DNA of 64,000 bases, taken from the sequence record MT799840.1; one strand, given 5' to 3'. Position 1 is the first letter of the stretch. The number at the start of each line of letters is the position of its first letter. Below are positions 5,736 through 54,974 of the stretch, in pieces. The notes beneath the pieces are model-generated. The model did no database searches. It was not told where the DNA came from and saw nothing but the letters and a program-made list of their open reading frames with translations. A program made the position numbers and the translations under genes.

Positions 5736-5811
5736 TTTCAGATATATATTACCTAGGTGATAGAAGACAATCTATCAACACAATCGACTATTAATCTAAA
5801 GGAGTATTGCC
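5736..5811 (+). promoter_or_regulatory. Early (virion-RNAP type) promoter cassette, copy 1
   Basis: TTTCAGATATATATTACCTAGGTGA + hairpin + AATCGACTATT + SD; TATATTAC is the phiKZ early consensus. Confidence 0.8.
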
Positions 5812-5955
5812 ATGTTAACTCGTAACCATAAACGTGCCATCTTTGCCATCGTTGCTGTTGTTGCTTTCGCGGTACTGTCTATCACTGTAACTCAAGATTA
5901 CAATAAGTGTATCGATAACGGTAACTCTGTTGCCATGTGTACAGGTCGCGGCTAA
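5812..5955 (+). CDS. Small membrane protein (47 aa, not in ORF track)
   Basis: Hand translation MLTRNHKRAIFAIVAVVAFAVLSITVTQDYNKCIDNGNSVAMCTGRG; SD AAAGGAG; stop overlaps next ATG (TAATG). Confidence 0.75.
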   Translation: MLTRNHKRAIFAIVAVVAFAVLSITVTQDYNKCIDNGNSVAMCTGRG

Positions 5956-6137
5956 TGGACTTTTCTGATGCGCAGTTTGCCGAGTTCTTATCTCACCCGC
6001 GTGTTAAACGTGAGTGGGATAATCTCACTAACAGTGTTCGTCGTCAGGACGAAGAAGAAATCGTTCACGTTACCGCACAAGTCTTACTCGTCTCACCGAC
6101 AGGTAATGTGTTTCCAATGCAGCAGGAGATTTACTAA
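5955..6137 (+). CDS. Small hypothetical early protein
   Basis: Start moved to ATG 5955 (MDFSDAQ...) by TAATG coupling. Confidence 0.65.
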   Translation: MDFSDAQFAEFLSHPRVKREWDNLTNSVRRQDEEEIVHVTAQVLLVSPTGNVFPMQQEIY

Positions 6138-6325
6138 TGGGTGTTTTAGTTAATTACGATGGTAAAAACGGAATCGTGCTTCGTGAAGTGGAAGATAACG
6201 AAGCAGTAGAGGTGAATCCGCAAACCTCAGAACGTACGTTTATCGTGGGGCCGAAAAGCGCACTACCGAAGCCGGACTGGAAAGAAGAGCTGGCGAAGTT
6301 CCGTGGGGAACTCGGGAAGAAGTAG
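6137..6325 (+). CDS. Small hypothetical early protein
   Basis: 62 aa, TAATG-coupled, followed by terminator. Confidence 0.65.
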   Translation: MGVLVNYDGKNGIVLREVEDNEAVEVNPQTSERTFIVGPKSALPKPDWKEELAKFRGELGKK

Positions 6326-6336
6326 TATAGATAATT

Positions 6337-6366
6337 TAATACCACCTACGGGTGGTATTATTTTTT
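6337..6366 (+). terminator. Intrinsic terminator
   Basis: TAATACCACC-TACG-GGTGGTATTA + T6. Confidence 0.85.
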
Positions 6367-6384
6367 GCCTAAGGAACGTGAAAA

Positions 6385-6801
6385 ATGATTAATGAGAAGC
6401 TCCAAAAGTATTTAAAGAATGACACCGACTGGATGGTCCTTGACCAGTACGGACGATTTGTTCCGCTATCCAAGGATTCCCCTATACCCCGTGACAAGGC
6501 GATTTATATTCCTGACGGTAAGGGCGGTTATCGTTTCTGGGAAGGCCAGGAAGTAAAAGAGGAAATGTTCTACATGGAGCCGAAGTTCCGTGCAGCGTTC
6601 CCATCGAAAAATATCAACGGCTATGTTTACAACGCAATTCCGCCAATTACGCATCCTAACTTTGAGGTTGTGAACTACCCCGCAACTGTTCTGGATTGGC
6701 AACGTGCCATTAGTGAACACTACACGATCCCGCTTGAAGGTGTTTACTTCCCATTCCGTGATATTAGTTTAGATGACTTTATTAACTCTCTTAAGGACTA
6801 A
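6385..6801 (+). CDS. Hypothetical protein
   Basis: 138 aa with SD AAGGA. Confidence 0.65.
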   Translation: MINEKLQKYLKNDTDWMVLDQYGRFVPLSKDSPIPRDKAIYIPDGKGGYRFWEGQEVKEEMFYMEPKFRAAFPSKNINGYVYNAIPPITHPNFEVVNYPATVLDWQRAISEHYTIPLEGVYFPFRDISLDDFINSLKD

Positions 6802-6803
6802 AA

Positions 6804-7664
6804 ATGTACAGCATTACTGATTTCATCAAAAGTTCAGATTTCCCCCTACCTCCCGACCACGAAGTATTGGCTAGCGATCCGTTAACCGATGCGGCCATTG
6901 TCCAGCTGGACCGCGACAAACGTCGTACTTACGTCGTGTTGGTCGAAGGGCAGAGCTACGGCCTGTCTTCTTACGACCTGGAGCAGCAGGAGCGTTTCCT
7001 CGATGAAAACCGCAAAACGTCAATGTATAGCGCTATCTCGCGCGCGTTGTGCAAGGTAATGGCGACGATCACAGACAGCAAAAAGCGCATTGCCGTGCTA
7101 CAGGGTATCAATGCGCTAACGACCAAAATCCAGCAACTTGAAGGTTTCCATTGCCCACGATTGGAAGCCGCACAGAAGGATGCTAAGGGCGATGAGGCCA
7201 TGGCGCTGTTTGAAGGCAATACTGTCTTTGCAACAGCTGAAGCTTGTTATCTCACCTATCCAACTTTTAACTATACGCCAATCAGCGACACCGTAGACGG
7301 GATTAAAGTAGAGAACGTCGTGCAATGGGGTCGCGCAAATCTCAAGTTTGTGATGTCCCATGAAGAAGAAAATCAAGACGGCCTTGGCCAGAAGATTCAA
7401 CGTTGGTTCACGGCGCGTTTGGACGCCGACTGGGAAGCGCATGTTAACGCAGAGCTTCGTAAGTTTCACGCGGTAGTCGCATTGTTAAAAGAAGACGCTC
7501 CCGCCCCGAAACAATCGAAGGCACCAGTGGTTGGCTGGACGTGTTCCGGCTGTAACCGCAACCATGTCGCTACCGTACCGAGAACCCATCGCTACACTTC
7601 GCAGACAATGAACATTGCTTGTCCGGCTTGCGGTAAGATCAACGAAGTTGATTATAAACCGTAG
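6804..7664 (+). CDS. Hypothetical protein with C-terminal zinc ribbon
   Basis: CSGC...CPAC pair near the C-terminus. Confidence 0.7.
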   Translation: MYSITDFIKSSDFPLPPDHEVLASDPLTDAAIVQLDRDKRRTYVVLVEGQSYGLSSYDLEQQERFLDENRKTSMYSAISRALCKVMATITDSKKRIAVLQGINALTTKIQQLEGFHCPRLEAAQKDAKGDEAMALFEGNTVFATAEACYLTYPTFNYTPISDTVDGIKVENVVQWGRANLKFVMSHEEENQDGLGQKIQRWFTARLDADWEAHVNAELRKFHAVVALLKEDAPAPKQSKAPVVGWTCSGCNRNHVATVPRTHRYTSQTMNIACPACGKINEVDYKP

Positions 7665-7666
7665 TA

Positions 7667-7710
7667 GTACCCCTCTTACCTTCGGGTAAGAGGGATTTGT
7701 ATTTATTTTC
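7667..7710 (+). terminator. Intrinsic terminator
   Basis: CCCTCTTACC-TTCG-GGTAAGAGGG + T-rich tail. Confidence 0.85.
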
Positions 7711-7712
7711 CG

Positions 7713-7751
7713 AAAAGAAAATAAAAGGCGCTCTCTCCCGAAGGAGAGAGC
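7713..7751 (-). terminator. Intrinsic terminator for leftward (dnaB) transcript
   Basis: On the minus strand GCTCTCTCC-TTCG-GGAGAGAGC followed by a T-tract. Confidence 0.75.
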
Positions 7752-7777
7752 TTATTCACATCCACTTAGAGGTTAAC

Positions 7778-7924
7778 ATGAATACCTTTATGCAACAACT
7801 GCGTCAGCAACAGCTGAAACAAGTCGCTTTTCAACAACGTCTGCAAGAGGTTACCCGCCAACCGCAGACTTCCACCCGTACCATTAAAGGACTAGGAGGT
7901 GAGATAATACTCAACAAGAGATAA
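7778..7924 (+). CDS. Small Gln-rich hypothetical protein
   Basis: SD AGAGG before ATG 7778; MNTFMQQLRQQQ...; 48 aa. Confidence 0.45.
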   Translation: MNTFMQQLRQQQLKQVAFQQRLQEVTRQPQTSTRTIKGLGGEIILNKR

Positions 7925-8068
7925 CAGGAATATTTGCCTGGAATAATTATACCCGAGTGCTAGAACACTCGGGTAATTCCACGCATATAAATAGTTCGTC
8001 GTATTTTTTTTTGATCTCGGCAGGACGCATAAACTGCCCGTAGGGGAGCCTAAGCTCCCCAGTGTTCG

Positions 8069-9631
8069 TTAGAACAAATCATCACCCATTCCACCGGTGA
8101 AGAAGTTGATAGACGACGCTGTTACGGTTTCTTCTTTATCACAATCCCAAGGCAGGATGCCTACATCCTGGAAAGGTATCACTGTGTAGTGATAAGATTC
8201 TTTAGTATCGATAATGGTGCGGTGTTTACCGCGTTGAACTTCTAAGAAGCTATGGCCGTTGACCACACGCTTGTTAAAATACATTTCACCATCGGCCTCG
8301 TTGTCAAGGCTCGAACAACTATCGTAAAGACCACGACCAGGTAAGTTCTTACAGAAGCCTACCGGGTCTAACGCTTTTAAGCGCTTACCTTCTGGGGAAA
8401 TCTGGTGTGGGGCAATTAAGAACCCACGGTTGCGTACCACTTGAATGTTACGAGCAATACGATAAATTTCTTTGATATCACTCCCGGCAATACCGTTGCC
8501 GTGTCCTGCTTTGCTGATTGTGCCTAAGTAGTCTGCGCGAATGCCAACAACATGATAACCACGACGACGTAAGTCGAGAATAAGGTCGTTGATGTAGTGC
8601 ACTTTAAAATCGGAGTTGGTGTGCTTTTGGAAAACGTAGTCCCAACCGTTTGCGCGAATCTTACCACAGAGGTAATCAGACATTGCTGTTGTGTGTGCTA
8701 ACTTCTCTTCAGCGGTTGCATCCTGTGCAATGGTCATCTGTGGAACTTGTCCTTCAAAATGACCGTACAGAGCTTGATAGCCGTAAGCTAAGTTAACGTC
8801 GAGTTCGTTTTCTAAACTCAAGTCAAGAATAATTGGTTGCAGTGTGCCCTTCACATCCGCCATTACTTTCTCAGGCGTGTTGAAGATAGGAATCGATAAG
8901 CTCAGTAAGAGACTGAACAAAGACTTACAGTTAAAAGGCAACGCCGGCATCAGCCACAGTTCTTCGGTAATCCCTTTGTTACAACCGAGCATTTGGTTAA
9001 TGGCTTTCCAGCCCGTCTGCAAACCATTACCTGCTGCTTTCTTGTTAATCGAGTCGAACACTTTAACAAACGGAGCCCGATTATCTGTAACCAGCTCACC
9101 GACCAATGATGGAATCTTATTATGAGAGCGTTCACCGAACGTAGATAGCGCCTCTTTGAGTTCGAGCACTGCGGTGTTCAGATCAACACGTGTCTCAGTT
9201 CCATTCAATGCCCCGAACGCGCGACCCATTTTTGTTTTGAGTTCGACGCTCTGTAAACATTGACGTAATTGGAAATAATATTGAGACAGTTGTCGATTAA
9301 GATGCTCGGTACGTTTGTCTTCTTCCTCGGGCAAATCGTCTTCGAGGAATTTGGTAATCGTATCGTATAGAGGACGTACTTGAGTGGTGGCCAGCTTCAA
9401 GCGCTTCATAACGCTCGCGTGGTCGTATTCCATGCCGCCGTCTATGATAGATGTGATAATGTCCTTGATCTCGATGAGTGCAAAGCGCTCTTCGCCATCT
9501 TCCGCATATTCCGGAAGCTTGATCTGCATCAGAACTTTTCTTATGACATCATGATCCTTGCTAGGGTCCGTCAGCATAGATTCTGTATACAGTGCGGCTA
9601 AGGCGGTTATCAACATCATTTTACTATTCAT
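8069..9631 (-). CDS. dnaB: Replicative DnaB-like helicase (phiKZ gp118 family)
   Basis: 520 aa; GLQTGWKAINQMLG, variant Walker A ALPFNCKS, LSLEN, Walker B ADYL, PHQIS and KHR motifs of DnaB; position opposite the capsid operon. Confidence 0.88.
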   Translation of the reverse strand: MNSKMMLITALAALYTESMLTDPSKDHDVIRKVLMQIKLPEYAEDGEERFALIEIKDIITSIIDGGMEYDHASVMKRLKLATTQVRPLYDTITKFLEDDLPEEEDKRTEHLNRQLSQYYFQLRQCLQSVELKTKMGRAFGALNGTETRVDLNTAVLELKEALSTFGERSHNKIPSLVGELVTDNRAPFVKVFDSINKKAAGNGLQTGWKAINQMLGCNKGITEELWLMPALPFNCKSLFSLLLSLSIPIFNTPEKVMADVKGTLQPIILDLSLENELDVNLAYGYQALYGHFEGQVPQMTIAQDATAEEKLAHTTAMSDYLCGKIRANGWDYVFQKHTNSDFKVHYINDLILDLRRRGYHVVGIRADYLGTISKAGHGNGIAGSDIKEIYRIARNIQVVRNRGFLIAPHQISPEGKRLKALDPVGFCKNLPGRGLYDSCSSLDNEADGEMYFNKRVVNGHSFLEVQRGKHRTIIDTKESYHYTVIPFQDVGILPWDCDKEETVTASSINFFTGGMGDDLF

Positions 9632-9645
9632 GGAGCATCCTTAAA

Positions 9646-10170
9646 ATGCAAATTCGTTTTAGTCCACCGTGGGAAGTTCAATCTAACATAGATAAAGGGG
9701 CTGGCGTTAAAAAGTTGGAGGAACTCCAAGCAAGCTTCTTTAACTGGTTATATGACTGCTCGTCGGGCTTTAGTTCCATCATACTGCCAGTGAGTGACCC
9801 TATTTCGATTTATAAATCGATTATGGCACCACCTGCACTTCCGACTCTTTATTATGACCAGGTCTTAAACCTGGTTGAGAAAGGTACGAATGAAACCCTT
9901 GCTGATTTATATGGGGAATCATTCGACGGTCGTTTACGTTGGGTGTTCTCACAACGTGGCGATGTTGTTGTGGCGTCTTTTGCAGAAGCTAAATCCGGAC
10001 CGGGTTTTTCTTTAAGTGAAGACCACGCTGCGAAAAAGATGTTCTGCGCAGAACTTTTTAAATATATGCGTCCCAAGACTCGTGTCGTGGATGATACGTT
10101 CAGTACGTCGACGCAGTTTGCTGCGCACGAAGTGCTGACGCAGTTGTACGCATGTCATTTATCTAAATAA
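9646..10170 (+). CDS. Minor virion protein preceding major capsid (phiKZ gp119-like)
   Basis: ATG 9646 after GGAG; conserved position between DnaB and capsid in phiKZ-like phages. Confidence 0.65.
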   Translation: MQIRFSPPWEVQSNIDKGAGVKKLEELQASFFNWLYDCSSGFSSIILPVSDPISIYKSIMAPPALPTLYYDQVLNLVEKGTNETLADLYGESFDGRLRWVFSQRGDVVVASFAEAKSGPGFSLSEDHAAKKMFCAELFKYMRPKTRVVDDTFSTSTQFAAHEVLTQLYACHLSK

Positions 10171-10182
10171 GGTAAACTTGAA

Positions 10183-12483
10183 ATGAAAGATACCCGTATC
10201 GCTAGTCTGGACCAGCTGGTTCAGCAGGGCAATGCTCTGGTCGCTGCTGCCAAGGCAGGCTCTTCCGCTAATGACGTATGGCAAACCGTAGCCGTTGGCG
10301 AATCTGTACGTAAAAATGCTGCCGGCTTCACCAACCTGCGTGACACTGCTCAGCAGCACTACGAAGCTGTAAACCCTGGCAAAACCATGAGCCACGCTGC
10401 TCAGGTTGCTTCTGCGATGATTCTGGCTGCTGCTGGTCACGAAGATGACTTCATGACCCGTGTTGCTGCTGAGAGCGCGAAGCCGGAATACGCCAGCTAT
10501 ATGCCGATCGCTATTTCTGGTGCAGCATCTCTGGCTGCTGACTACGGTAAAACTCCGCTGGTCGCAACCGAATACTACACCAACAAAGACCTGGACAAAA
10601 ACCTGGGTCTGACCTGGACGCTGAACGTGCGTGCTCTGGAAACTCAATCCAAGTTTGCAGAAACCCTGTTCCCGACCATCACTGTGGACACCAACGACGT
10701 CGGCATCACCGTTCGTACCAAAGTTACTACTGTAACTCGTGGTATCCTGAACGCCCTGCTGACCAAAGACGTGGTTGAAGACAACCGTCAGCCGCTGCAT
10801 AACGCGCTGTCTAACCACAAAGTCCTGCAGGACGATGCTATCCGTATCGTACCTTACGTGATGGAAACCGGTGAGAACGCGAAGTTCTTCGTATCCGAAG
10901 ACATCATCGAAAACGAAAACGTTCAGCTGGGTCGTGTGCCGGCGTATCCGACCAACTACCTGAGCTTCTCTGAACGTCGTCTGAACCTGTTCCAGCTGTC
11001 TGCCCATCCGGGTATCGTGCAGGAAGGTTACGATGAAACCGACGAAATCGCACCGGGTGCAGCGCTGGGTAGCCTGCTGCTGTCTGTGCGTAAGCCGACT
11101 GAAGAAGCGAAAGATGGCGCGCTGATCAAACTGAACGTACGCGACATGCAGTTCGCTACCTTCCAGCGTCCTCCTGAAGGTGATGGCCGTGAGCTGGTCC
11201 TGCAGTTCCGTCGCACTGTGTTCTCCCTGAACGCCAAGTCCCTGGACTGGAAAGGTGCTGAAATCCCGGCACTGGCCGCTCTGGCACAGAACGATTACAC
11301 CATTCGTTATTCCATGAACATCAGCATGTCTCTGTTCACCAACGGTCAGTTCTCTGGTCGTGTTGACGTGACTGCACCGTCTCTGGAAATCGAAGGTCTG
11401 TACGACGCAACTGGTACTGCTGTTGATATCGAAAGCGGCACCGGCAAAGTCATCATCGACAACCTGAAACTGGAGCTGCTGGGCTGGCGCTTCGACGGTA
11501 CTCGTACCAACGAGAACCGGAGAACCCAGGGCCTTCTGCTCGACCCGATTTGGGAACAAGAGAACTACAAACTGCAGTACGGTTCTCCGATCATGACCAA
11601 ATCTCCGGTTGGCGTTGAATACGACGACACCGAACGTCTGGACGACCTCGTTTCTGCGGTTAACATCCGTAACGAAATGCTGGCTATCACTCAGACTCTG
11701 TCTTACACCGAAGCGGTTAAGAACGCAGCTGCGTCCATGATCACTCCGTGGGACAAACCTGCTATCCGCGGCCTGGGCCGTCACTGGGTTGCTCCGTGGT
11801 ACAGCGAAAGCGACTACGAAGTGGACAAAGTGATCCAGTCTCTGGATACCAAAGATGCGCTCATCAACGCCCGTCAGGGTCTGGTACAGCGTATCGGTGA
11901 CCAGGTAACTCGTGCTATCCAGGACTCTCGCTTCATGCCGGCTCTGCGCCTGCTGACTGCGGACCCGAACGCACTGCCGAAAGTTGTTATCGCAACTGAT
12001 GAACCGACTGCTGCAATGCTGCTGCTGGTTCAGGGTGACCAGCGTCTGCTGGGCGATCGCTACGAGTACGAAGTTATCACCACCAACGATGACCGCTGGC
12101 GTGTGAAGAACGAAGCTGACGGCAGCTGGACTCGTCGCCTGCAGTGGGTTCTGAAAGTTCCAACCGCTGATGACGGTTCTTACTGTGTTCTGAACTGGGG
12201 TAACCACTTCTGGTCTCCGATCATGGTAACCAACATCAACATCCAGCGTAACGGCGCTACCAGCAAAGAGCTGGCAGTACAGCCTCGTAACGCGCACATC
12301 TGCCACTGCCCGATCACTGGTCTGATCTGGATTAAAGGTATCACCAAGTTCGTGGAAGAGAAACTGGCGTTCAACGTCACTACTACTTCCAACGGCACCG
12401 GCGGTACTAACGGTGGTAATGCTGGTGATGTTGGCGGCGGTGCTACCCAGCCAGGTACTGGCGGTGAAGGCGCTGGCGGCTAA
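10183..12483 (+). CDS. Major capsid protein (phiKZ gp120/SPN3US gp75 family)
   Basis: 766 aa, extreme highly-expressed codon bias, Ala-rich propeptide ending in A-T-E at residue 130, Gly-rich tail, strong terminator. Confidence 0.93.
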   Translation: MKDTRIASLDQLVQQGNALVAAAKAGSSANDVWQTVAVGESVRKNAAGFTNLRDTAQQHYEAVNPGKTMSHAAQVASAMILAAAGHEDDFMTRVAAESAKPEYASYMPIAISGAASLAADYGKTPLVATEYYTNKDLDKNLGLTWTLNVRALETQSKFAETLFPTITVDTNDVGITVRTKVTTVTRGILNALLTKDVVEDNRQPLHNALSNHKVLQDDAIRIVPYVMETGENAKFFVSEDIIENENVQLGRVPAYPTNYLSFSERRLNLFQLSAHPGIVQEGYDETDEIAPGAALGSLLLSVRKPTEEAKDGALIKLNVRDMQFATFQRPPEGDGRELVLQFRRTVFSLNAKSLDWKGAEIPALAALAQNDYTIRYSMNISMSLFTNGQFSGRVDVTAPSLEIEGLYDATGTAVDIESGTGKVIIDNLKLELLGWRFDGTRTNENRRTQGLLLDPIWEQENYKLQYGSPIMTKSPVGVEYDDTERLDDLVSAVNIRNEMLAITQTLSYTEAVKNAAASMITPWDKPAIRGLGRHWVAPWYSESDYEVDKVIQSLDTKDALINARQGLVQRIGDQVTRAIQDSRFMPALRLLTADPNALPKVVIATDEPTAAMLLLVQGDQRLLGDRYEYEVITTNDDRWRVKNEADGSWTRRLQWVLKVPTADDGSYCVLNWGNHFWSPIMVTNINIQRNGATSKELAVQPRNAHICHCPITGLIWIKGITKFVEEKLAFNVTTTSNGTGGTNGGNAGDVGGGATQPGTGGEGAGG

Positions 12484-12513
12484 TAATCCGTAAGGATTAC
12501 GTTGCCTAAGATT

Positions 12514-12551
12514 AGCTTACTCCCTTCGGGGAGTAAGCTTTTTCTTTTTTT
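12514..12551 (+). terminator. Intrinsic terminator after major capsid gene
   Basis: AGCTTACTCCC-TTCG-GGGAGTAAGCT + T-tract; preceded by TAATCC-GTAA-GGATTA hairpin. Confidence 0.9.
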
Positions 12552-12559
12552 CTAAAAAT

Positions 12560-12588
12560 TTATAGATAGATATTATCTTAGGGAGAGA
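12560..12588 (+). promoter_or_regulatory. Variant early-type promoter
   Basis: TTATAGATAGATATTATCTTAGGGAGAG. Confidence 0.6.
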
Positions 12589-12618
12589 GTCATTCGGTTT
12601 TAACTTAAGGAGACAGTA

Positions 12619-12816
12619 ATGGATATCGTTTTAGAGAAATCAAAACTGTCCGCACCAATGTTTGACGGTGCTGGATTTATGGTTCGTACGCACAGGGATA
12701 ACTCGTGGGCCACAAGTTTCGGGGGCGATGCTGACGTTCCTGTAGATAGCCAGACGTCTAATACCCTAAAGTTTTTTACGTTACGGGCACTGGGTATGAA
12801 CCCGTGCCCAAAGTAA
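12619..12816 (+). CDS. Small hypothetical protein
   Basis: 65 aa with strong SD TAAGGAG, between two early-type promoter motifs. Confidence 0.5.
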   Translation: MDIVLEKSKLSAPMFDGAGFMVRTHRDNSWATSFGGDADVPVDSQTSNTLKFFTLRALGMNPCPK

Positions 12817-12842
12817 TCTGAGATAGATATTATCTACGTGAA
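12817..12842 (+). promoter_or_regulatory. Variant early-type promoter
   Basis: TCTGAGATAGATATTATCTACGTGAA upstream of the nvRNAP-containing operon. Confidence 0.55.
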
Positions 12843-12874
12843 TAATTCTTTTGGTATTATTACTGGGATGCTCA

Positions 12875-13879
12875 ATGAACCGTTATGATTTAGACGTTCA
12901 GCCAACGCTAACCCAGCGGCCCATGCACCGTGGTGCCGTGTCGAAGACTATCACGTACGAAAATAATACCGGGTTTCCCATATACGTCACTGAACTCAGT
13001 GGCGGGCATTTTGTTTTAGCCCCGTCGTCCACCACAGCGGCGGAATTTGGGATTGTGATTTACGTGACCTATACGGTGTTTGCGAACGGTGCGAACTTAT
13101 CTGGTTTGCGCGACGCGCATTCGCCAAAGCAGTATGCGCAGATATGTAAGGAATTAACTACGAACGGCGAAACAACGCTGATGTATGTAGTTGATGATAT
13201 CGGTGCGTTAATGCGAGGCGACTTGGTGGTGTTGAAGAAGCTAGGAATGGCTTTCTCTACTCAACCAGTAAAACTCGATTCTGAGGTTATTGGTAAGCCA
13301 GGAGGGGATCGTAAAGAATTTGCCTTGGGCGTGGTAGTTGTGCAGAAGTACGAAGACCCAGCACCTTTAAAGTGGCTGAGGTTCTATACAACGATGTTGG
13401 AAGTCGAACCGATTCGATCGAAGTATTACGACGAGGGTATTTACATGGTAATCGGTGGTGCGGAGTGTGTCGAAGGGGGTAAAATGATAATGTACTCTTT
13501 CGATGACCCGATGTCCCCGTTCCGGGCCTTTACATCTGAAGATGAAGCGAGGCGTTATCGGTGGCTCGATAACATTCCAGAGTTGCGAGATGTTCGTGCG
13601 AAGCTGGAAGCCACGTATCAGGCCAAGTTGCAAGATCTCGATGAGAAAAAGAATCGGCAAGACCTCGATTATCGTACGCAACTTAATAATTTGGCGCTGG
13701 AGAAGGAGAGGATTAACACCCTTAACACAATCCAGACGAATGAGCTTAAGTTGCGTTCCGATGTTCGTAAAGACCAATACGAGTCCCGAGCTTATCAGCG
13801 AAAAGATAGCTCGGAGTTCTTGAAATCCATTCCCGCGTATTTGGCTGCAGGGGTAGCGCTCGTTGGGATGATTCTCTGA
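12875..13879 (+). CDS. Conserved hypothetical protein with coiled coil and C-terminal hydrophobic tail
   Basis: ATG 12875; heptad-rich C-terminal third; ends IPAYLAAGVALVGMIL; coupled to next gene. Confidence 0.7.
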   Translation: MNRYDLDVQPTLTQRPMHRGAVSKTITYENNTGFPIYVTELSGGHFVLAPSSTTAAEFGIVIYVTYTVFANGANLSGLRDAHSPKQYAQICKELTTNGETTLMYVVDDIGALMRGDLVVLKKLGMAFSTQPVKLDSEVIGKPGGDRKEFALGVVVVQKYEDPAPLKWLRFYTTMLEVEPIRSKYYDEGIYMVIGGAECVEGGKMIMYSFDDPMSPFRAFTSEDEARRYRWLDNIPELRDVRAKLEATYQAKLQDLDEKKNRQDLDYRTQLNNLALEKERINTLNTIQTNELKLRSDVRKDQYESRAYQRKDSSEFLKSIPAYLAAGVALVGMIL

Positions 13880-15669: not shown

Positions 15670-15700
15670 TTATTACATCTCTTAAGGAGTATTACTTACA

Positions 15701-33092: not shown

Positions 33093-33130
33093 ACCCACTC
33101 CTTCGGGAGTGGGTCGACTCTATTGTTTTT
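33093..33130 (+). terminator. Terminator-like hairpin
   Basis: ACCCACTCC-TTCG-GGAGTGGGT, displaced T-tract. Confidence 0.65.
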
Positions 33131-33155
33131 CGGATAGATATTATTTTAGGGAGAC
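33127..33155 (+). promoter_or_regulatory. Variant early-type promoter
   Basis: TTTTCGGATAGATATTATTTTAGGGAGAC. Confidence 0.6.
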
Positions 33156-33164
33156 GTGCAAAAT

Positions 33165-33187
33165 TTACGTTTCATCCTTAGCATATG
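33165..33187 (+). promoter_or_regulatory. Bipartite promoter TTAC-N15-TATG
   Basis: AAATTTAC GTTTCATCCTTAGCA TATG. Confidence 0.65.
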
Positions 33188-34742: not shown

Positions 34743-34783
34743 GTACCCCTCTTACCTTCGGGTAAGAGGGTATTGTCTTTTTT
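34743..34783 (+). terminator. Intrinsic terminator (identical core to 7667)
   Basis: 28-nt exact match to 7667-7694. Confidence 0.85.
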
Positions 34784-34827: not shown

Positions 34828-34903
34828 TTTCAGATATATATTACTTAGGTGAGAGTTACTACTAAACTCTCTAATCGACTATTAATCTAAAAGGAGTATT
34901 CTA
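34828..34903 (+). promoter_or_regulatory. Early promoter cassette, copy 2
   Basis: TTTCAGATATATATTACTTAGGTGA + hairpin + AATCGACTATT + SD. Confidence 0.8.
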
Positions 34904-35269
34904 ATGCGTTTTAAACATCAAACCGTTGTGTTGGCAAAGAAAGCGTTTTTGGTTCGTCTTTCTTACATTATTACTCGTGTCACTGCGAAGGACGTTACGC
35001 AGAAAGACATTGCGTTATTAGTAGGCTGCTCACCGTCACAAATATCTGCGATTAAAAATGAACGTGAGAAGGCCGTGACTATCGAAACATTGATGCGGGT
35101 TGCTGATACACTGCGCCTGAATTACGAAATCGTCTACCGTTCTATCAACGGTAAATGTCGTCATAGCTTTAAAATTGAATCATGCATCGATTACATGAAC
35201 AACTGTCCTATCCGGGTACGAGAAACAGGACTTAAAGTCATGGCACGTAAACCTTCTGCAGTAATGTAG
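34904..35269 (+). CDS. XRE/Cro-C1 helix-turn-helix protein
   Basis: VTQKDIALLVGCSPSQISAIKNE...VTIETLMRVADTL is a canonical HTH_3 pattern. Confidence 0.85.
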   Translation: MRFKHQTVVLAKKAFLVRLSYIITRVTAKDVTQKDIALLVGCSPSQISAIKNEREKAVTIETLMRVADTLRLNYEIVYRSINGKCRHSFKIESCIDYMNNCPIRVRETGLKVMARKPSAVM

Positions 35270-41403: not shown

Positions 41404-41433
41404 TTTTCAGATAGATGTTATTTTACTGAACCT
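41404..41433 (+). promoter_or_regulatory. Variant early-type promoter
   Basis: TTTTCAGATAGATGTTATTTTACTGAACCT. Confidence 0.6.
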
Positions 41434-45259: not shown

Positions 45260-45270
45260 GGAGAGTCCTC

Positions 45271-45666
45271 GTGAAATTGATTATGCCTAAAACCGTTCCT
45301 AATCAGGATATGGTTACGACTACACTATTTTCTGAATCATTACGTAACTCTGTACGTCAGACCGCTTCACGTCTAGACGTGGCAGTTGAAGAACTCGACC
45401 CAGAAGTCTTCATGAAGTATGCGTTTATTGCAGAAGGTTACGCGATCGCCCTGAGTTATGCGCGGTATGTCGATGACGTGACAGAAGCTAAACGTTATTT
45501 AGAAGGCTGTTGTCAAGTTTTCCGTGAAGAAATCACCGAGATGGAGATGGTTGACCGTGGCTTACCTGAATTTGTAAAGGTGGGTTACGATAAGCTGTTG
45601 CAATCCATCGCGGATGAGATCAAACGTCGCGGGTTAACTGTTGCGCACAGTGCTACACTGCACTAA
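45271..45666 (+). CDS. Hypothetical protein
   Basis: GTG start after AAGGAG. Confidence 0.6.
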   Translation: MKLIMPKTVPNQDMVTTTLFSESLRNSVRQTASRLDVAVEELDPEVFMKYAFIAEGYAIALSYARYVDDVTEAKRYLEGCCQVFREEITEMEMVDRGLPEFVKVGYDKLLQSIADEIKRRGLTVAHSATLH

Positions 45667-45679
45667 CAGCGTACGAGTA

Positions 45680-45722
45680 GGCTACCACACGATCATATGT
45701 GTGGTAGCTTATTTTTTTGTTT
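45680..45722 (+). terminator. Intrinsic terminator
   Basis: GCTACCACAC...GTGTGGTAGC + T-tract. Confidence 0.75.
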
Positions 45723-45734
45723 CTGGAGGCGTTA

Positions 45735-46274: not shown

Positions 46275-46759
46275 TGGCCAGCCCAGTTAAAAAGCAAACA
46301 TTTGAGAGCTTACCATTTTATACCGATATCACCAACGTGAAAGATGGGATGTTGTTGTTTATCAAAGATGGGAAAGCGTATCAGTACCCGCTCGAGATGT
46401 TGGGTGTCCAGAAGGTTGCTCAGGGTGTCGTTATTCGTGATGCGGCGTATGAGTTGGAAGCGGCAGCAGCCACTGATTGGTACCTAGGACTGTCGCAACC
46501 GGAAACCGATCTCACTATTAAAAGTGATGGTGTATTGGGGGCATTTCGGTACACGCTCAACCTGACTATTCTTCAGGGAACGGGAGCCAACAAAATTAAC
46601 TGGCCTTCCAACGTGAAGTTCCCCCATGATGCATACCCGGTGCTGTCGTACCAGAAAGGGAAATCGGACATGATTACCCTGACTACAATCGACGGCGGTT
46701 ACACCTGGAAAGGTGGCGTTAGTGGAACAGGATATACAGAATGGGTAGAAACTCCTTAA
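46274..46759 (+). CDS. Tail-fibre-associated small protein
   Basis: WPSNVKFP...PVLS...GKSDMITLTTIDGGYTW is a common fibre-associated beta domain. Confidence 0.55.
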   Translation: MASPVKKQTFESLPFYTDITNVKDGMLLFIKDGKAYQYPLEMLGVQKVAQGVVIRDAAYELEAAAATDWYLGLSQPETDLTIKSDGVLGAFRYTLNLTILQGTGANKINWPSNVKFPHDAYPVLSYQKGKSDMITLTTIDGGYTWKGGVSGTGYTEWVETP

Positions 46760-49758: not shown

Positions 49759-49763
49759 GTGTA

Positions 49764-49806
49764 TACCAGCTATCCTTCGGGGTGGCTGGTACGCTTTATT
49801 TTATTT
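49764..49806 (+). terminator. Intrinsic terminator
   Basis: TACCAGCTATCC-TTCG-GGGTGGCTGGTA + T-rich tail. Confidence 0.85.
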
Positions 49807-49832
49807 CAGATAGATGTTATCTCAGTGAACCT
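49803..49832 (+). promoter_or_regulatory. Variant early-type promoter
   Basis: ATTTCAGATAGATGTTATCTCAGTGAACCT. Confidence 0.6.
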
Positions 49833-49839
49833 CTGAAAT

Positions 49840-49862
49840 TTACGTTTCAATCAGAGCTTATG
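49840..49862 (+). promoter_or_regulatory. Bipartite promoter TTAC-N15-TATG
   Basis: AAATTTAC GTTTCAATCAGAGCT TATG. Confidence 0.65.
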
Positions 49863-49885
49863 TCATGTATTAAGGAGCAATTAAA

Positions 49886-50218
49886 ATGTCTAAAGTCTAT
49901 CACATTGCGGTATTGCGTCAGGCAACTGACCTTGAAGGCGACGGTGAACTTCGAATGCAGGAAGCCATTCTGAGCACCGTTAAAGAACTTAACCAAGCAA
50001 ACAATTTCGATGCACGCTTCGAAGCGTTACCAGTAAGCCGCAGTGCTTTCTACGGCAGTCAAATACTGGCAACCCAGTATGCGATGGCTTTAAGTGACTT
50101 GCGCAATAACCCTAGTCCTGAAACCGCGGCGAAGATGAACAAGCTGTCGTTATGGATGAATAACCTGGATGTCCCCGCAGCATCCACTGTAAGTGGTTTG
50201 GGGGTGGTTAATGGGTAG
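49886..50218 (+). CDS. Hypothetical early protein
   Basis: SD TAAGGAG behind tandem promoters. Confidence 0.65.
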   Translation: MSKVYHIAVLRQATDLEGDGELRMQEAILSTVKELNQANNFDARFEALPVSRSAFYGSQILATQYAMALSDLRNNPSPETAAKMNKLSLWMNNLDVPAASTVSGLGVVNG

Positions 50219-50546
50219 AGTAATCCGTGTTGCCAGACCAATGCGTCTCAATAGGACGCCGATGATAAATCGTGATATCAGTGAAGCTGTAAAACAGTTG
50301 TCGAATATCGACGGTTACACCTTTAAAGTGATAACACTGTACGACTACCCAGAAGGCAAAGTTCCGCAAGAGGCGCTGGATAAATTCGTTAATGTATTAG
50401 ACGATTGCCTTAAGAGCCCAACGGACGTAAATCTTATCAAACTTAACACCATGTCCCTTGAACTGTACCGGCTGCGTAAAATGGGCATTCATGCTCGCAT
50501 CGGTAAAGGCGACCAAACGTTAGCCGAATACTGGGCTAAACAGTAA
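50211..50546 (+). CDS. Hypothetical protein
   Basis: ATG 50211 overlaps the upstream stop. Confidence 0.6.
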   Translation: MGRVIRVARPMRLNRTPMINRDISEAVKQLSNIDGYTFKVITLYDYPEGKVPQEALDKFVNVLDDCLKSPTDVNLIKLNTMSLELYRLRKMGIHARIGKGDQTLAEYWAKQ

Positions 50547-50573
50547 GCTATTTTAAATCCTAAGGAGCATTAA

Positions 50574-51092
50574 GTGAATATTATCATGAACCTGTATACC
50601 AAACGGGAACGTAACGTTTTAGAATCGGGCGTTGCCCCGGAAGTATTGGCTGCGGGGGATATTAGTATCGACCCATTGAAAGTGAAAGTCGCGGAACTGT
50701 TCCCTCGTGATGAATGGGACATCTGGTATTTCCGTTGTTCGTCGGTATTAAATGCAATCAAACAACTGTCTGATTATCAGCCTGGTCCGTATATCGGTAC
50801 CTGGCACTGGTACGTTCCACGCACACCAAACTTCCTTTACCTGCACGACGATGATAAACGCACTCATATTCGCACTGTAGCGACGCCTGCGCGTTTGGAG
50901 CGTTATCTGGAGCTAATCCACGACCGGCCTCGTAACGAGCTACAGAGCATCGTAGAGGTGCTCAGACAGGTACCTTTAGACGGTATACTGGAACTGGACA
51001 TGAAAATCGCCGATCGTCCGAGACATTACTGGGAATTTTCCTGGGTAGACGCGAAGTACGAAAACCATAACGTTATCTATCTGAAGCGTTAA
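50574..51092 (+). CDS. Hypothetical protein
   Basis: SD TAAGGAG, GTG start. Confidence 0.65.
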   Translation: MNIIMNLYTKRERNVLESGVAPEVLAAGDISIDPLKVKVAELFPRDEWDIWYFRCSSVLNAIKQLSDYQPGPYIGTWHWYVPRTPNFLYLHDDDKRTHIRTVATPARLERYLELIHDRPRNELQSIVEVLRQVPLDGILELDMKIADRPRHYWEFSWVDAKYENHNVIYLKR

Positions 51093-51102
51093 GGGGGACA
51101 GG

Positions 51103-51423
51103 ATGTTGAACTGGTTACTTGCGCTGATTAACAAGCGACAAAAACAACTGTACGAAGAAAACCGAGAATTAGCTGCCGCTAACCGTCGTGTACAGGCCGA
51201 TAACTTGCAGTTAAGACACGACCTCGCGAAACTGGGCGTTAATGCGAGTAGGCTCTGCACGCACATAAGTCGCTGTCACGACATTATCGAACGTATTGGG
51301 CACTACCATCTTACGTCCCCAGCCCGGCGTGCCTATGACGCGGCCGTTCAGGGATTAAAAGATACCAGGAGTGCGTACGACGAGATGTTAGAAGAATTTA
51401 GTAAACGTGAGGATAAAGACTAA
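51103..51423 (+). CDS. Coiled-coil hypothetical protein
   Basis: 106 aa, heptad pattern. Confidence 0.6.
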   Translation: MLNWLLALINKRQKQLYEENRELAAANRRVQADNLQLRHDLAKLGVNASRLCTHISRCHDIIERIGHYHLTSPARRAYDAAVQGLKDTRSAYDEMLEEFSKREDKD

Positions 51424-51806
51424 TGGAAATGCCAATGAACACCGACTTAGCACTGGCAATCGAACACATGAAAAACCATCAGCTGACGTTACTGAATGCA
51501 AGCACAGACGGACAACGTCAAGGGTATGCACTCGTTGCAAAAGCAGCGTTAGAACTTAACAAAATCCTGCTCGCTAAACTCTACAGCCTGGAGAACAGCG
51601 TGCTTCACGCAACGCATCTGGGTGAGGCCAGCGAGCTGGTTACAGACGTGCGCCTATATGCATCGCGCGAAATGGAGCGCTTAGTCAACGAGTGGAACGT
51701 TCAGTGTAACAGTGAGCGTGCTGATAACGATCCACGTAAAGTTGCACTGACGCCAGGCGTGTATATCAAGGACGGTAGCATCAACGAATATACCGGATTT
51801 AACTGA
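51423..51806 (+). CDS. Hypothetical protein
   Basis: TAATG coupling. Confidence 0.65.
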   Translation: MEMPMNTDLALAIEHMKNHQLTLLNASTDGQRQGYALVAKAALELNKILLAKLYSLENSVLHATHLGEASELVTDVRLYASREMERLVNEWNVQCNSERADNDPRKVALTPGVYIKDGSINEYTGFN

Positions 51807-51829
51807 TCGGTAGATAAGGGTAATTGATA

Positions 51830-52255
51830 ATGTTAACCATAGACGTAGCTATCTCTATCGAGCTTCAACGCATCGGTGTAGGTACACTAAAACTTCGTTA
51901 TCGCGATTTACCGCATTACAACAAGATGTTTGATGTTGGGGTGATAAAGTTTTATAACCGGTACGGGCCAAGAGAACTGTGTCTGTGGTTTGTTGAGTTA
52001 GCGATAACCTACGGCGAGTTTTATCATCCTAACATACCGCATGTCAGACATGTGTCAAGAGGGCACCTGGAAACTTCCAGAGAGTTCTGTCAGCGATTGT
52101 ATAGCGCGATGGAGGAGTCCGCACCCATCGACTATGACGTGCCACCTGAACTGTTATTAATCGACCACGAAGGAGAAGCCGGTGTCTATTTCATTACGGG
52201 GACTGACTATTCACGAGATTCAGAAATATTTACTCGAGGGCGGGAAACTGACTGA
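51830..52255 (+). CDS. Hypothetical protein
   Basis: ATG 51830 after AAGGG. Confidence 0.55.
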   Translation: MLTIDVAISIELQRIGVGTLKLRYRDLPHYNKMFDVGVIKFYNRYGPRELCLWFVELAITYGEFYHPNIPHVRHVSRGHLETSREFCQRLYSAMEESAPIDYDVPPELLLIDHEGEAGVYFITGTDYSRDSEIFTRGRETD

Positions 52256-52487
52256 CGACTATCAAACCGCAGATATGTTGCTACAGTCATTTGTACCGTT
52301 ACGTGCTGAGTATTACGAAATCGCGTTCCTGGGCGATGAATATTGTGTCCGTACACAAGGTCGCGAATACGAAGCAGTTCGCGTACCACGAACACTCGGC
52401 GGGGTGATGATACTTATCGCTAATATCGAAGCACTCAATGCGAAATGTGCGTTATACATCGCACAGGGAGGTCGCAATGGATTTTAA
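52182..52487 (+). CDS. Hypothetical protein
   Basis: GTG start after AAGGAG; overlaps upstream gene by 74 nt. Confidence 0.55.
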   Translation: MSISLRGLTIHEIQKYLLEGGKLTDDYQTADMLLQSFVPLRAEYYEIAFLGDEYCVRTQGREYEAVRVPRTLGGVMILIANIEALNAKCALYIAQGGRNGF

Positions 52488-52635
52488 GTGGGAACCATTA
52501 TCGTTAGCAGAAGTTCGTAACAGAATCGATAGAGCTATTGCAAGGAGAAAACATGTTCGGCCTGTTTCAGGAGAAAAAACAATTGCGTCGCCAATTAGAA
52601 ATACTGGAATTGGAACTCAGCCTATCAAAGACTGA
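52477..52635 (+). CDS. Possible small protein
   Basis: SD GGAGG before MDFKWEPL; overlaps next gene by 83 nt. Confidence 0.3.
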   Translation: MDFKWEPLSLAEVRNRIDRAIARRKHVRPVSGEKTIASPIRNTGIGTQPIKD

Positions 52636-52954
52636 GTTGGAAATTTCGAAAGAAGCGTGGAAGAGAAATCTCGATGAATCTTTCGAAGAACGCCGTAAGC
52701 TTACACGATTACTTTCTGAGGAACAGTCTAAGAACCGGAAACTCGAAGATGGGCTACGGGATGCCCGACGAGATGCGGATCTGCGTGACAAGATGTTAGG
52801 ACGGAACCTGGGTGCCCTAATCTATTTCATAGAGCAACGTTGGGAACCAAAAACACTCCTTGAGTTGCTCTATGAAAAACTCTCCTGTGTAGGTAAACGT
52901 TCTGCGGCCATCGAGTATTTCCGTAGTCACGGTTTCGAGGTAAAAGATGAGTAA
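52553..52954 (+). CDS. Coiled-coil hypothetical protein
   Basis: SD AAGGAG before MFGLFQEKK. Confidence 0.65.
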   Translation: MFGLFQEKKQLRRQLEILELELSLSKTELEISKEAWKRNLDESFEERRKLTRLLSEEQSKNRKLEDGLRDARRDADLRDKMLGRNLGALIYFIEQRWEPKTLLELLYEKLSCVGKRSAAIEYFRSHGFEVKDE

Positions 52955-53031
52955 ATTAGAGGTTGGCAGGCTGTTCGTTAATCCTTAAAAGCAACAGTTT
53001 CAAATTAGTTACGACCATAAGGAGTATTCAA

Positions 53032-53835
53032 ATGTTAAAACCACGCAAACAGAAAAGATTACAGTTTGTCAAAATAGTACATCCACAGTCCCGTCGTGTT
53101 ACAGGTGGACGTCTCTACGTGGGTAAACACCGTAGTCGTCTTATCACCTGGTCGGCAATGGCCAACGTAGCCACCCAACTCCAGGCAATGGTTGAAGACC
53201 GTTGCCAGTTAAAAGGGGATTTCTTTCAAGAGAAGAAACCCTATCGTGATATCTTCCGTACACTAAAAGCGTGCTGGGTACTCAGCTGGGTGCCTGGCCG
53301 CGAACAACTTTATTTTCTGCGTAAGTTCCCACGCCCTATGCCGAAGGAAAACATTAGCGTTTTCTTAGACAAACTAAAACGCTTTAATGACATCGGCATA
53401 AACGCTAATAAAGAGCAAGTTTCTGCTACAGTAGCAGCCCGAAAACACTTACGCGATTATGTGGCCGATCGAGATGTTGAGTTCGCTTATATGACGCCGA
53501 CTGTACCGCTGCTAAACGGTGATGCATTGAAAGCGAAGATGGAAGAGATCGCGTTGAAGTTTCCTAACATCAGACACATCGCACCAGACGCGGTACTACA
53601 GCTGAACACTGAAGGCTGCACGCGATTACCGACAGTCTCTGACACGGTGTTAGTATCAACACCTGATGTCCCTGAGGGGAAATCTTTCCTTGAAATGATA
53701 AAGAAACGTACAGAGGGTGGATATCAGCCGGTCTTTCTAGATTCCCTGTCAGAGCATCCTGATGCGAAGCAAGAGTTTAACATGAACACCAACAGCCCTT
53801 ACGACTCACTCTACAAGGATGGTAATGATGCTTAA
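53032..53835 (+). CDS. Hypothetical protein starting MLKPRKQKR
   Basis: SD TAAGGAG before ATG 53032. Confidence 0.7.
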   Translation: MLKPRKQKRLQFVKIVHPQSRRVTGGRLYVGKHRSRLITWSAMANVATQLQAMVEDRCQLKGDFFQEKKPYRDIFRTLKACWVLSWVPGREQLYFLRKFPRPMPKENISVFLDKLKRFNDIGINANKEQVSATVAARKHLRDYVADRDVEFAYMTPTVPLLNGDALKAKMEEIALKFPNIRHIAPDAVLQLNTEGCTRLPTVSDTVLVSTPDVPEGKSFLEMIKKRTEGGYQPVFLDSLSEHPDAKQEFNMNTNSPYDSLYKDGNDA

Positions 53836-54052
53836 ACCGAAGAAAAGAAAGAAGCCCATTAACATCATGCATGGTATATGTGGTGGTGTTGTTGGATATC
53901 GCGGTGATGTTCGTTTTCCAATTGGCCAAGATGCGATTGAGGGCATTCTGCTCATCTACTCACCGTCTGTAAATTACCCATCGGCTCCGAAGGTCGTTAA
54001 TCGTGTGTTAGAATTAGTGAGGACTGGCTATGTTAAAACCAAAGAAACGTAA
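53828..54052 (+). CDS. Small hypothetical protein starting MLKPKKRKK
   Basis: SD AAGGA; ATG 53825 or 53828. Confidence 0.55.
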   Translation: MLKPKKRKKPINIMHGICGGVVGYRGDVRFPIGQDAIEGILLIYSPSVNYPSAPKVVNRVLELVRTGYVKTKET

Positions 54053-54461
54053 AGATGGCGCAGTCATTCTCACTCCGAGAATTTCTGTGGCTGTTGGTAA
54101 GAAACTGGTGGTTCAAGATGGCAAGTGGTTAAGCGACGGTTTCCACAGCTATTCTGCCCATGCAATGGCTGACAATATGCGCGTGATGCACAACAGCCGT
54201 GGCCGCAACCGTCGCGACCAATACCCTAAGCCTATCCGTGTATTGGCGACGTGGTATATGCGCTACATGCAGAAGAATTTCGGTCATGACAAGTCCGTCG
54301 GTAAGATGGTGCACGAGTACAATTTCAAACGTGCGCAAAAAACACTCGCCGGTGGTGAAGTGGTACCACCGCCACGGCGTTTAGGTTACATGTCAGTCGA
54401 CCGTGCTGTTTTTGAACTACAGAATGCGGAAGATAAGGAGAATAACAATGTCGGGGATTGA
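54030..54461 (+). CDS. Basic hypothetical protein starting MLKPKKRKD
   Basis: SD GAGGA. Confidence 0.65.
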   Translation: MLKPKKRKDGAVILTPRISVAVGKKLVVQDGKWLSDGFHSYSAHAMADNMRVMHNSRGRNRRDQYPKPIRVLATWYMRYMQKNFGHDKSVGKMVHEYNFKRAQKTLAGGEVVPPPRRLGYMSVDRAVFELQNAEDKENNNVGD

Positions 54462-54834
54462 AGAACTCGAGAACGGGATGAAGTGCTACACGTTTGAAGA
54501 TGGGACGGTGTTGACTTCGACCACTAACGAACTTGCTGACCTGGTCCCCGACCACAACTATTTCGTCATGGGTAATGAGAAGGTTTATCCCGGTGGCGAA
54601 ATAGGTATTCTCTTTAAATGGTTCGTATGTGATGAAATCACCGACGATGAACGTTACGAACACGTCAGTAAGGCGATGTTCGAGACGGGTGAGATAGAAC
54701 ACACCGGTCGTGTACGTGTCCTTTCGAACGATGGACACGCTGTTGAGCTTGAATGGATCGCGTCCGGGCGTCCGAGACAGAAACACTATTATAACGGCAG
54801 CGGAATCACCACCGTTGCAGAAAGCCTTAACTAA
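54448..54834 (+). CDS. Acidic hypothetical protein
   Basis: SD TAAGGAG before ATG 54448. Confidence 0.65.
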   Translation: MSGIEELENGMKCYTFEDGTVLTSTTNELADLVPDHNYFVMGNEKVYPGGEIGILFKWFVCDEITDDERYEHVSKAMFETGEIEHTGRVRVLSNDGHAVELEWIASGRPRQKHYYNGSGITTVAESLN

Positions 54835-54838
54835 GGTC

Positions 54839-54876
54839 TACCCTACTCCTTCGGGAGTAGGGTTTCTTCTTTTTTT
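54839..54876 (+). terminator. Intrinsic terminator
   Basis: ACCCTACTCC-TTCG-GGAGTAGGGT + T-tract. Confidence 0.9.
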
Positions 54877-54897
54877 GCCTAGTCCGATTACAATTAT

Positions 54898-54974
54898 TTT
54901 CAGATATATATTACTTAGGTGAGAGTTAACCATTAACTCTTATCTAATCGACCATTATCTTAAGGAGTTTTAAC
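54898..54974 (+). promoter_or_regulatory. Early promoter cassette, copy 3
   Basis: TTTCAGATATATATTACTTAGGTGA + hairpin + AATCGACCATT + SD. Confidence 0.8.

Follow-up and report, generated by a model that had tools for sequence, protein, structure and literature searches.

Among the closest described relatives of the element studied here are the early promoters of phiKZ-like phages. In AR9 the early consensus has been mapped as AAATATATATTAT-(6N)-G+1, and transcription in phiKZ and phiR1-37 also starts 6 nt downstream of the element (PMC5312081). For phiKZ the promoter is given as TATATTAC, and those predicted for N1M2, OBP and 201phi2-1 match the longer motif described below (PMC7058600, Table 2). 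Here we analyse a stretch of 64,000 nucleotides (the window), 100% identical to bases 62001-126000 of Salmonella phage JN03 (MT799840.1), in which an early promoter of this type is repeated and is each time followed, from the predicted first transcribed base, by a hairpin of different sequence. JN03 is a SPN3US-like Seoulvirus with five annotated RNA polymerase (RNAP) beta genes and one beta' gene, the split multisubunit type found in phiKZ-like Chimalliviridae. The remaining parts of its 241-kb genome were also analysed; coordinates are window positions unless marked as JN03 genome.

Secondary structure at the 5′ end is known to stabilize E. coli mRNAs, as both RppH and RNase E depend on a 5′ end that is single-stranded (PMC3997798, citing Emory 1992, Bouvet and Belasco 1992, Arnold 1998). 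A 5′-terminal stabilizer is thus an established device that appears to be new for these phages. The motif searches of the phiKZ and 201phi2-1 transcriptome papers covered the region upstream of the start only (PMC8244752, PMC11512511); the hairpin and stem-loop passages of the transcriptome papers for these two phages describe no hairpin at +1, and a text search of the literature gave no other description. We propose that the JN03 hairpin protects early mRNAs from RppH and RNase E in the style of ompA or T7 gene 10, and that it is followed by a separable box and a strong Shine-Dalgarno sequence (SD), a reading that we consider somewhat probable on balance. Both the fold and its placement with respect to the promoter are well supported; the stabilizing function is proposed on the precedent of ompA, papA and T7 gene 10.

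Early promoters and the hairpins at their predicted starts

An earlier note on this DNA, made from the sequence alone, had placed a 25-mer at 5736, 34828 and 54898. It is indeed present on the + strand without mismatches at 5736-5760, 34828-34852 and 54898-54922, exactly three times in the window (0 expected), and no further match with up to 3 mismatches was found there or in 100 shuffles. The 8-mer TATATTAC by itself is not significant in the window (3 found vs 1.5 expected). The conserved part comprises the 23 bases up to -1, with an AT-rich, -10-like KATATTAY core, six bases between the core and the start, T at -1 and G at +1, and with TTTCARR upstream. This register is identical to TATATTAT-(6N)-G+1 of AR9 (PMC5312081), and at 7/7 TATATTAC early promoter sites of our phiKZ sample, the first 50 kb of that genome, the core is followed by T in the sixth and G in the seventh position. 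The assignment of TATATTAC to the phiKZ early promoter, stated in the earlier note, agrees with the published table (PMC7058600, Table 2). Judged by its sequence, the 25-mer is the SPN3US-clade form of the phiKZ-like virion-RNAP early promoter. A sigma-70 reading was rejected, as the scan shows no sigma-70-like site at the cassettes.

The strong motif occurs six times in the genome (JN03 genome 58070, 67739, 96831, 116901, 165089 and 223654), and each copy is followed by a hairpin, a different one each time. In addition, a position weight matrix scan identifies a broader general class, AGATAGATATTATCT-NN-GTGAR, with ~23 sites on the + strand of the genome, five of them in the window. The three copies of a cassette proposed earlier are therefore correct for the window, but the genome holds six, only promoter and leader are repeated, and three is also too few because the broader, weaker promoter class carries +1 hairpins too. 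As the spacing register of AR9 and phiKZ was applied, the starts listed here are predictions by homology from AR9, phiKZ and 201phi2-1. The promoters and hairpins of the window are:

5736-5758 (-23 to -1), + strand: strong-class early promoter, copy 1, with TATATTAC at 5745-5752; predicted start G 5759
5759-5776, + strand: 5′-terminal hairpin of copy 1, GATAGA/TCTATC, 6 bp with a 6-nt loop; extra T-A pair 5758/5777
34828-34850, + strand: strong-class early promoter, copy 2, exact 25-mer; predicted start G 34851
34851-34871, + strand: 5′-terminal hairpin of copy 2, GAGAGTT/AACTCTC, 7 bp with a 7-nt loop
54898-54920, + strand: strong-class early promoter, copy 3, exact 25-mer; predicted start G 54921
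54921-54941, + strand: 5′-terminal hairpin of copy 3, GAGAGTTAA/TTAACTCTT, 9 bp with a G-U closing pair and a 3-nt loop
~33128-33173, + strand: general-class promoter (33128-33150) with a hairpin from +1, predicted start G 33151, gene start 33245
33151-33173, + strand: hairpin after this promoter, GAGACGTG/TACGTTTC, 8 bp including G-U
12817-12861, + strand: general-class promoter with a hairpin AATAAT/ATTATT from +2 (12841-12861)
49804-49856, + strand: general-class promoter with a hairpin from +5 and a 14-nt loop
12560-12582, + strand: general-class promoter without a convincing +1 hairpin
41405-41427, + strand: general-class promoter with a short leader and without a +1 hairpin

In all four window leaders with a predicted start, that is the three strong copies and 33128, the minimum free energy (MFE) fold pairs nucleotide 1 and contains a 6-9 bp stem across +1 to +18/+23. 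Taken alone, the four hairpins fold far better than shuffles (z -3.2 to -5.4): copy 1 reaches -5.9 kcal/mol (z -5.35, nucleotide 1 paired), copy 2 -7.8 kcal/mol (z -3.2, nucleotide 1 paired), copy 3 -7.5 kcal/mol (z -5.0) and the hairpin behind promoter 33128, which had also been noticed before, -8.0 kcal/mol (z -4.3). In the predicted folds of copies 2 and 3 the leader box, SD and AUG are fully unpaired; in copy 1 an additional weak helix spans the region of box and SD, and two more hairpins form upstream of the SD in the 33128 leader. Searches against Rfam gave no match at gathering score across the window and none at E<=1 for the three leaders.

The promoter itself is quasi-palindromic (ACCTAGGT at -8 to -1; AGATA..TATCT in the general class), as seen at 5745-5760, 34837-34852 and 54907-54922, and the weight matrix therefore scores the opposite strand too. 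Outside the window, mirror-image hits lie between divergent genes at JN03 genome 15987/16007 and 191990/192010, which suggests that these sites may be bidirectional promoters.

Selection on pairing and a proposed protection of the 5′ end

Relatives were collected by an exact-pattern scan of IMG/VR with the 19-mer core, which gave 44 loci on ~12 contigs, mostly jumbo-phage genomes of 220-246 kb; among them are SPN3US, phages of Erwinia (ChrisDB, Huxley/Machina and Caitlin) and metagenomic contigs. Together with JN03, these Salmonella and Erwinia relatives and metagenomes provide 45 distinct leaders, or 30 once near-identical ones are collapsed. The 15-mer general core matched, among the matches listed in IMG/VR, mostly unrelated contigs, and was used after weight-matrix filtering only.

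The mean uninterrupted stem from +1 in the 30 non-redundant leaders is 5.57 bp. Dinucleotide shuffling of the 3′ part lowers it to 3.59±0.26 bp, and 0/1000 shuffles reach the observed value. When the 5′ arm is paired with the downstream sequence of other leaders, an arm swap that takes out the contribution of the common GAG start, the mean is 4.06±0.23 bp and 0/2000 swaps reach the observed stem. A covariance model seeded with eight leaders aligned 54 matches, 44 of them distinct; in these 44 leaders 92.3% of the cells are paired (74.3±1.6 when shuffled), double-sided changes are found in 57 cells (15.8±2.9 expected), and once the partner is slid by 1-3 columns the covariation score is at most 0.05, compared to 0.34 in register. 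Stems of at least 6 bp starting at +1 to +3 are present at 62% of the strong-class and 28% of the general-class promoters, compared to ~6% by chance; general-class leaders often measure 23-37 nt, which is too short for the hairpin. The hairpin at the predicted 5′ end is thus real and selected, with pairing beyond chance or shared ancestry. Folds, swap and shuffle tests and the covariance model all uphold the previous observation that the hairpin sequence changes while the pairing is kept.

Several features point to the strand and the molecule in which the structure acts. The sense MFE is below the antisense value in 23/30 leaders (p=0.003), and G-U accounts for 20/136 stem pairs in this set. 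With the closing pair excluded, the model alignment contains 18 G-U pairs and 6 A-C combinations; the closing pair itself is G-U in 31 and G-C in 11 leaders. The loops, 3-14 nt across leaders, have no conserved sequence, and stem sequence and loop size vary as well. The sense bias, the G-U excess and the unconserved loops agree with a sense-strand RNA structure; neither a cruciform nor a sequence-specific protein site would readily account for them. Between the two interpretations offered before, a conserved structured 5′ leader agrees with a hairpin that begins at the first base of the predicted transcript, covaries and leaves the SD mostly open; a DNA hairpin used by the virion RNAP is disfavoured by the excess of G-U over A-C, the sense bias, loops of up to 14 nt and a position downstream of the predicted start.

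We suggest that each unit would act as a terminator-insulated early start for the virion RNA polymerase. Transcription would begin at the G and yield an RNA whose leading 18-23 bases fold at once into a stem-loop of 6-9 bp. With the triphosphate end base-paired, RppH and the 5′ sensor of RNase E, both of which in enterobacteria need a single-stranded 5′ end, would be impeded, and the earliest phage messages, made while the host RNases are fully active, would live longer. Ribosomes would still have access to the remainder of the leader, which consists of an AU-rich stretch containing the box AATCGACYATTA, then a strong AAGGAG and the AUG. A stabilizing role is suggested because the hairpin starts at the first nucleotide, its sequence varies freely and the ribosome site is open. 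The survival and translation of the first chimallivirus messages, which are made when shell and RNase inhibitors are absent, are poorly understood; if our reading is correct, a promoter-coupled 5′ hairpin would be a simple explanation for the SPN3US group that can be put to the test. The strongest immediate-early units and their exact starts could then also be picked in new jumbo-phage genomes from sequence only. The unit of terminator, promoter, hairpin, box and SD measures ~130 bp, would be independent of the host polymerase and could serve phage engineering.

A number of observations weigh against a protective 5′ hairpin. RppH acts on only ~10% of E. coli mRNAs (PMC3997798), and the +1 position for SPN3US-like phages is a prediction. 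The covariance-model alignment was fitted to the structure, so that more weight was given to the alignment-free tests. The model-derived alignment has gap-rich loop columns, and for this reason RNAalifold missed the stem and gave only an invariant pairing within the promoter. Conservation also extends to the sequence of the 5′ arm (GAGAG/GAGAT), and part of the signal could be a constraint on the initially transcribed sequence. In the phiKZ sample a stable +1 hairpin is found at only 2/7 early promoters, with 5/7 lacking one. Pairing is kept in the Salmonella and Erwinia relatives and in metagenomes, but conservation across the family, as suggested earlier, fails in the phiKZ sample. As most of the sampled phiKZ promoters are hairpin-free, the hairpin is not needed for transcription by the virion polymerase generally; as far as the first 50 kb of phiKZ represent the family, it seems to belong mainly to the enterobacterial SPN3US/Erwinia clade and not to the family as a whole. 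One of the two phiKZ hairpins (-8.8 kcal/mol) belongs to the early promoter of the nuclear shell gene (gp54), at 45568-45620 of this sample.

The remaining point concerns bases outside the predicted RNA. In 19 of the 30 representative leaders the stem from +1 measures at least 5 bp; the helix ends exactly at +1 in 10 of these 19 and continues 3-6 bp into -1 to -6 in 7. In copy 3 it can be extended at the DNA level to 54915-54947, giving 15 bp from -6. Upstream extensions of at least 4 bp occur in six leaders, against 0.9 expected from shuffled flanks. The conserved TAA after the stem is complementary to TTA at -6 to -4, which accounts for part of this excess but is not a full explanation. Possibly the hairpin arose by local inverted duplication of -6 to +9, after which only the transcribed part would have been maintained. 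The extension of the helix into the promoter keeps alive a role at the DNA or initiation level, in which the virion polymerase would read a palindrome from -6 to ~+27, or in which this palindrome would influence melting and promoter escape on injected DNA, with the RNA hairpin as a by-product. The quasi-palindromic promoter with weight-matrix hits on both strands, the conservation of the 5′ arm as expected for an initially transcribed sequence, and the use of single-stranded templates by the AR9 non-virion polymerase (PMC7598289) would all suit such a role. We nevertheless regard it as unlikely: G-U is tolerated three times more than A-C and the sense strand folds better, where a duplex or cruciform signal should be symmetric, and loops of 6-14 nt, unfavourable for cruciform extrusion, are common. 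Moreover, general-class hairpins start at +1 to +3 and rarely extend upstream, the helix so often stops exactly at +1, and phiKZ promoters of the same type are mostly without any repeat.

Leader box, downstream genes and flanking terminators

Behind the hairpin, the conserved box followed by AAGGAG and ATG that had been described before is present at all three copies, and the genes of the window begin as follows:

5782-5793, 5799-5804 and 5812, + strand: leader box AATCGACTATTA, SD AAGGAG and ATG of copy 1
5812-5955, + strand: unannotated open reading frame (ORF) of 47 amino acids, membrane-like, behind copy 1; phrog_8574 at 1.7e-28
34873-34884, 34891-34896 and 34904, + strand: leader box, SD and ATG of copy 2
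34904-35269, + strand: gene for an HTH_3 regulator behind copy 2; Pfam HTH_3 at 2e-07, phrog_7126
54946-54957, 54962-54967 and 54975, + strand: leader box AATCGACCATTA, SD and ATG of copy 3
54975-55421, + strand: gene for a hypothetical protein of 148 amino acids behind copy 3; phrog_8484

The downstream proteins fall into different PHROGs, so that a duplicated gene family was rejected as an account of the cassette. Since unrelated genes stand behind the six copies, the repeat consists of promoter and leader only and does not represent a gene cassette. Around copy 1 the JN03 record has no annotation between 5569 and 6385; further small ORFs lie at 5937-6137 and 6137-6325.

The box consensus AATCGACYATTA is found 3-9 nt ahead of the SD in 5/6 strong leaders. 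It also stands directly at +1 of one general-class promoter that has no hairpin, and, together with an SD, before genes without a nearby early promoter (JN03 genome 58925, 166050, 166998, 186169 and 224577). Two of these promoterless boxes come right after a terminator, and the one at 186169 precedes an unannotated ORF. Since the box occurs elsewhere without hairpin or promoter, it is a separable module. Its complementarity to E. coli 16S rRNA, of the T7 epsilon enhancer type, is not above that of shuffles, and the translation boost suggested in the earlier note finds no support in this form.

The hairpin, with or without the box, might be an RNA platform for a phage or host protein or for the ribosome, serving preferential translation, a timed early shut-off or the handling of transcripts in the early compartment. 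Hairpin, box and strong SD stand together on the strongest promoters, the box also precedes promoterless early genes, which points to a separate function in the mRNA, and phiKZ proteins that target ribosomes immediately upon infection are known (PMC10914614). Recognition by a specific protein is hard to reconcile with a loop sequence, loop size and stem sequence that are all unconserved, and the distance from hairpin to SD is variable, in untranslated regions (UTRs) of 37-64 nt. As the box also shows no 16S rRNA complementarity above chance, and hairpin and box occur apart from each other as well, we consider such a platform quite unlikely. We see slightly less prospect still for a bolder proposal, in which hairpin and box would be a dedicated mark of immediate-early virion-polymerase transcripts in enterobacterial chimalliviruses, read by a phage factor, for example for release from the early compartment, loading onto phage-modified ribosomes or timed shut-off, or in which a start-spanning palindrome would act directly on the virion polymerase on injected DNA.

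Each window copy lies just after a terminator:

5576-5600, + strand: intrinsic terminator at the end of the operon upstream of copy 1, 10-bp stem with 6 GC pairs and a T-rich tail
34747-34770, + strand: intrinsic terminator upstream of copy 2, from the terminator scan
54840-54863, + strand: intrinsic terminator upstream of copy 3, from the terminator scan

Between the terminator and the promoter of copy 1 lies a compound hairpin (5663-5716), with an outer stem CCCTCTATA/TATAGAGGG around GCTCTCAAA/TTTGAGAGC (-27.2 kcal/mol, z -5.2). The collinearity of JN03 and SPN3US resumes exactly at the copy 3 terminator. Just upstream of this terminator, ~1.37 kb of JN03 (53473-54839) have no SPN3US counterpart, and SPN3US has ~420 bp extra after the position corresponding to 55720. 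In the Erwinia relatives a unit of ~105 nt with terminator, promoter and hairpin is 80-87% conserved, and the length between the cassette and the next conserved gene varies by up to ~2.3 kb. In a 221-kb metagenomic jumbo contig (IMGVR_UViG_3300045988_113438) the ~59-nt promoter-hairpin stretch (7439-7497 of the analysed locus) is the only part of a 4.5-kb query that matches reference phages at megablast level, the cassette being the DNA with the highest conservation there.

The cassette repeats also appear to mark the edges of variable gene slots. This arrangement, together with the unrelated ORFans downstream, is what would be expected if the repeats were mainly PeSL-like recombination substrates that shuffle the variable genes they flank, the hairpin being incidental. 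Recombination needs identity, yet the hairpin differs between copies with its pairing kept, which is the mark of structural selection; such a role is compatible with a protective 5′ hairpin but leaves the covariation unexplained, and as the main function we judge it improbable.

The terminators bear on one more alternative, namely that the hairpin is a promoter-proximal attenuator, a pause site or a put-like cis-antiterminator for the virion polymerase. UUUUA follows many of the stems, and transcripts of phiKZ and 201phi2-1 often end prematurely within 5′ UTRs (PMC10914365, PMC11512511). At JN03 genome 165089-165170 the strong promoter and its hairpin are followed directly by a strong, GC-rich terminator ahead of the box and the gene at 165187, an order conserved in SPN3US; this arrangement predicts either a short 5′-UTR RNA of ~60 nt or an attenuator. 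The +1 hairpin was rejected as an intrinsic terminator: none was scored as one, and the scan flags only the upstream terminators, which are GC-rich. With only -6 to -8 kcal/mol the AU-rich stems are weak, their U-run is short and lies partly within the stem, and there is no conserved sequence for the polymerase to bind. An effect of the hairpin on elongation or termination is therefore, in our estimate, very improbable.

Comparison with known promoters, cassettes and stabilizers

In its promoter the JN03 unit resembles the early promoters of phiKZ, 201phi2-1, OBP, N1M2 and AR9, with which it shares the KATATTAY core, the upstream TTTCARR, GTG at the start and a place before early operons (PMC7058600, PMC5312081). 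In its surroundings it seems similar to the PeSL cassettes of T4-type phages, which likewise repeat an intergenic stem-loop terminator, an early promoter and an SD beside variable ORFans (PMC2839356). The PeSL promoters are, however, of the sigma-70 type, whereas the JN03 promoter is of the virion-RNAP type, and the PeSL stem-loop is a terminator placed inside or around the -10 box, or immediately downstream of it (PMC2839356), whereas JN03 has a second, covarying hairpin inside the predicted transcript.

The virion RNAP promoters of phage N4 offer a parallel, since there too a polymerase carried in the virion goes together with an inverted repeat at the early promoters. The hairpin of N4 forms in the DNA, upstream of the start; it has a 3-nt loop and is recognized by a single-subunit enzyme. 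In contrast, the JN03 repeat lies downstream of the predicted start (+1 to ~+22), has loops of 3-14 nt and shows a G-U asymmetry that points to RNA.

At the level of the message, the ompA and papA stabilizers of E. coli are similar to the JN03 leader: a hairpin starts directly at the 5′ end or no more than 1-2 nt from it (the predicted end in JN03), its sequence is free while the pairing matters, and the leader behind it is open and holds the ribosome site (PMC3997798). They are single host genes with measured half-lives, whereas the JN03 hairpins, known from sequence alone, recur as a class in phage leaders that share a single type of promoter.

The leader of T7 gene 10 (phi10) matches JN03 in its layout, with a phage-polymerase promoter and a purine-rich start inside a 5′-terminal stem-loop. 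Both leaders continue with an AU-rich unpaired spacer and a strong AAGGAG, with the AUG ~50-60 nt from +1. According to Mertens et al. 1996, the T7 5′ stem-loop reportedly adds to mRNA stability. T7 differs in its single-subunit polymerase and unrelated promoter, and its enhancer pairs with 16S rRNA, for which the JN03 box shows no counterpart above chance; unlike T7, JN03 places a different hairpin sequence at every promoter.

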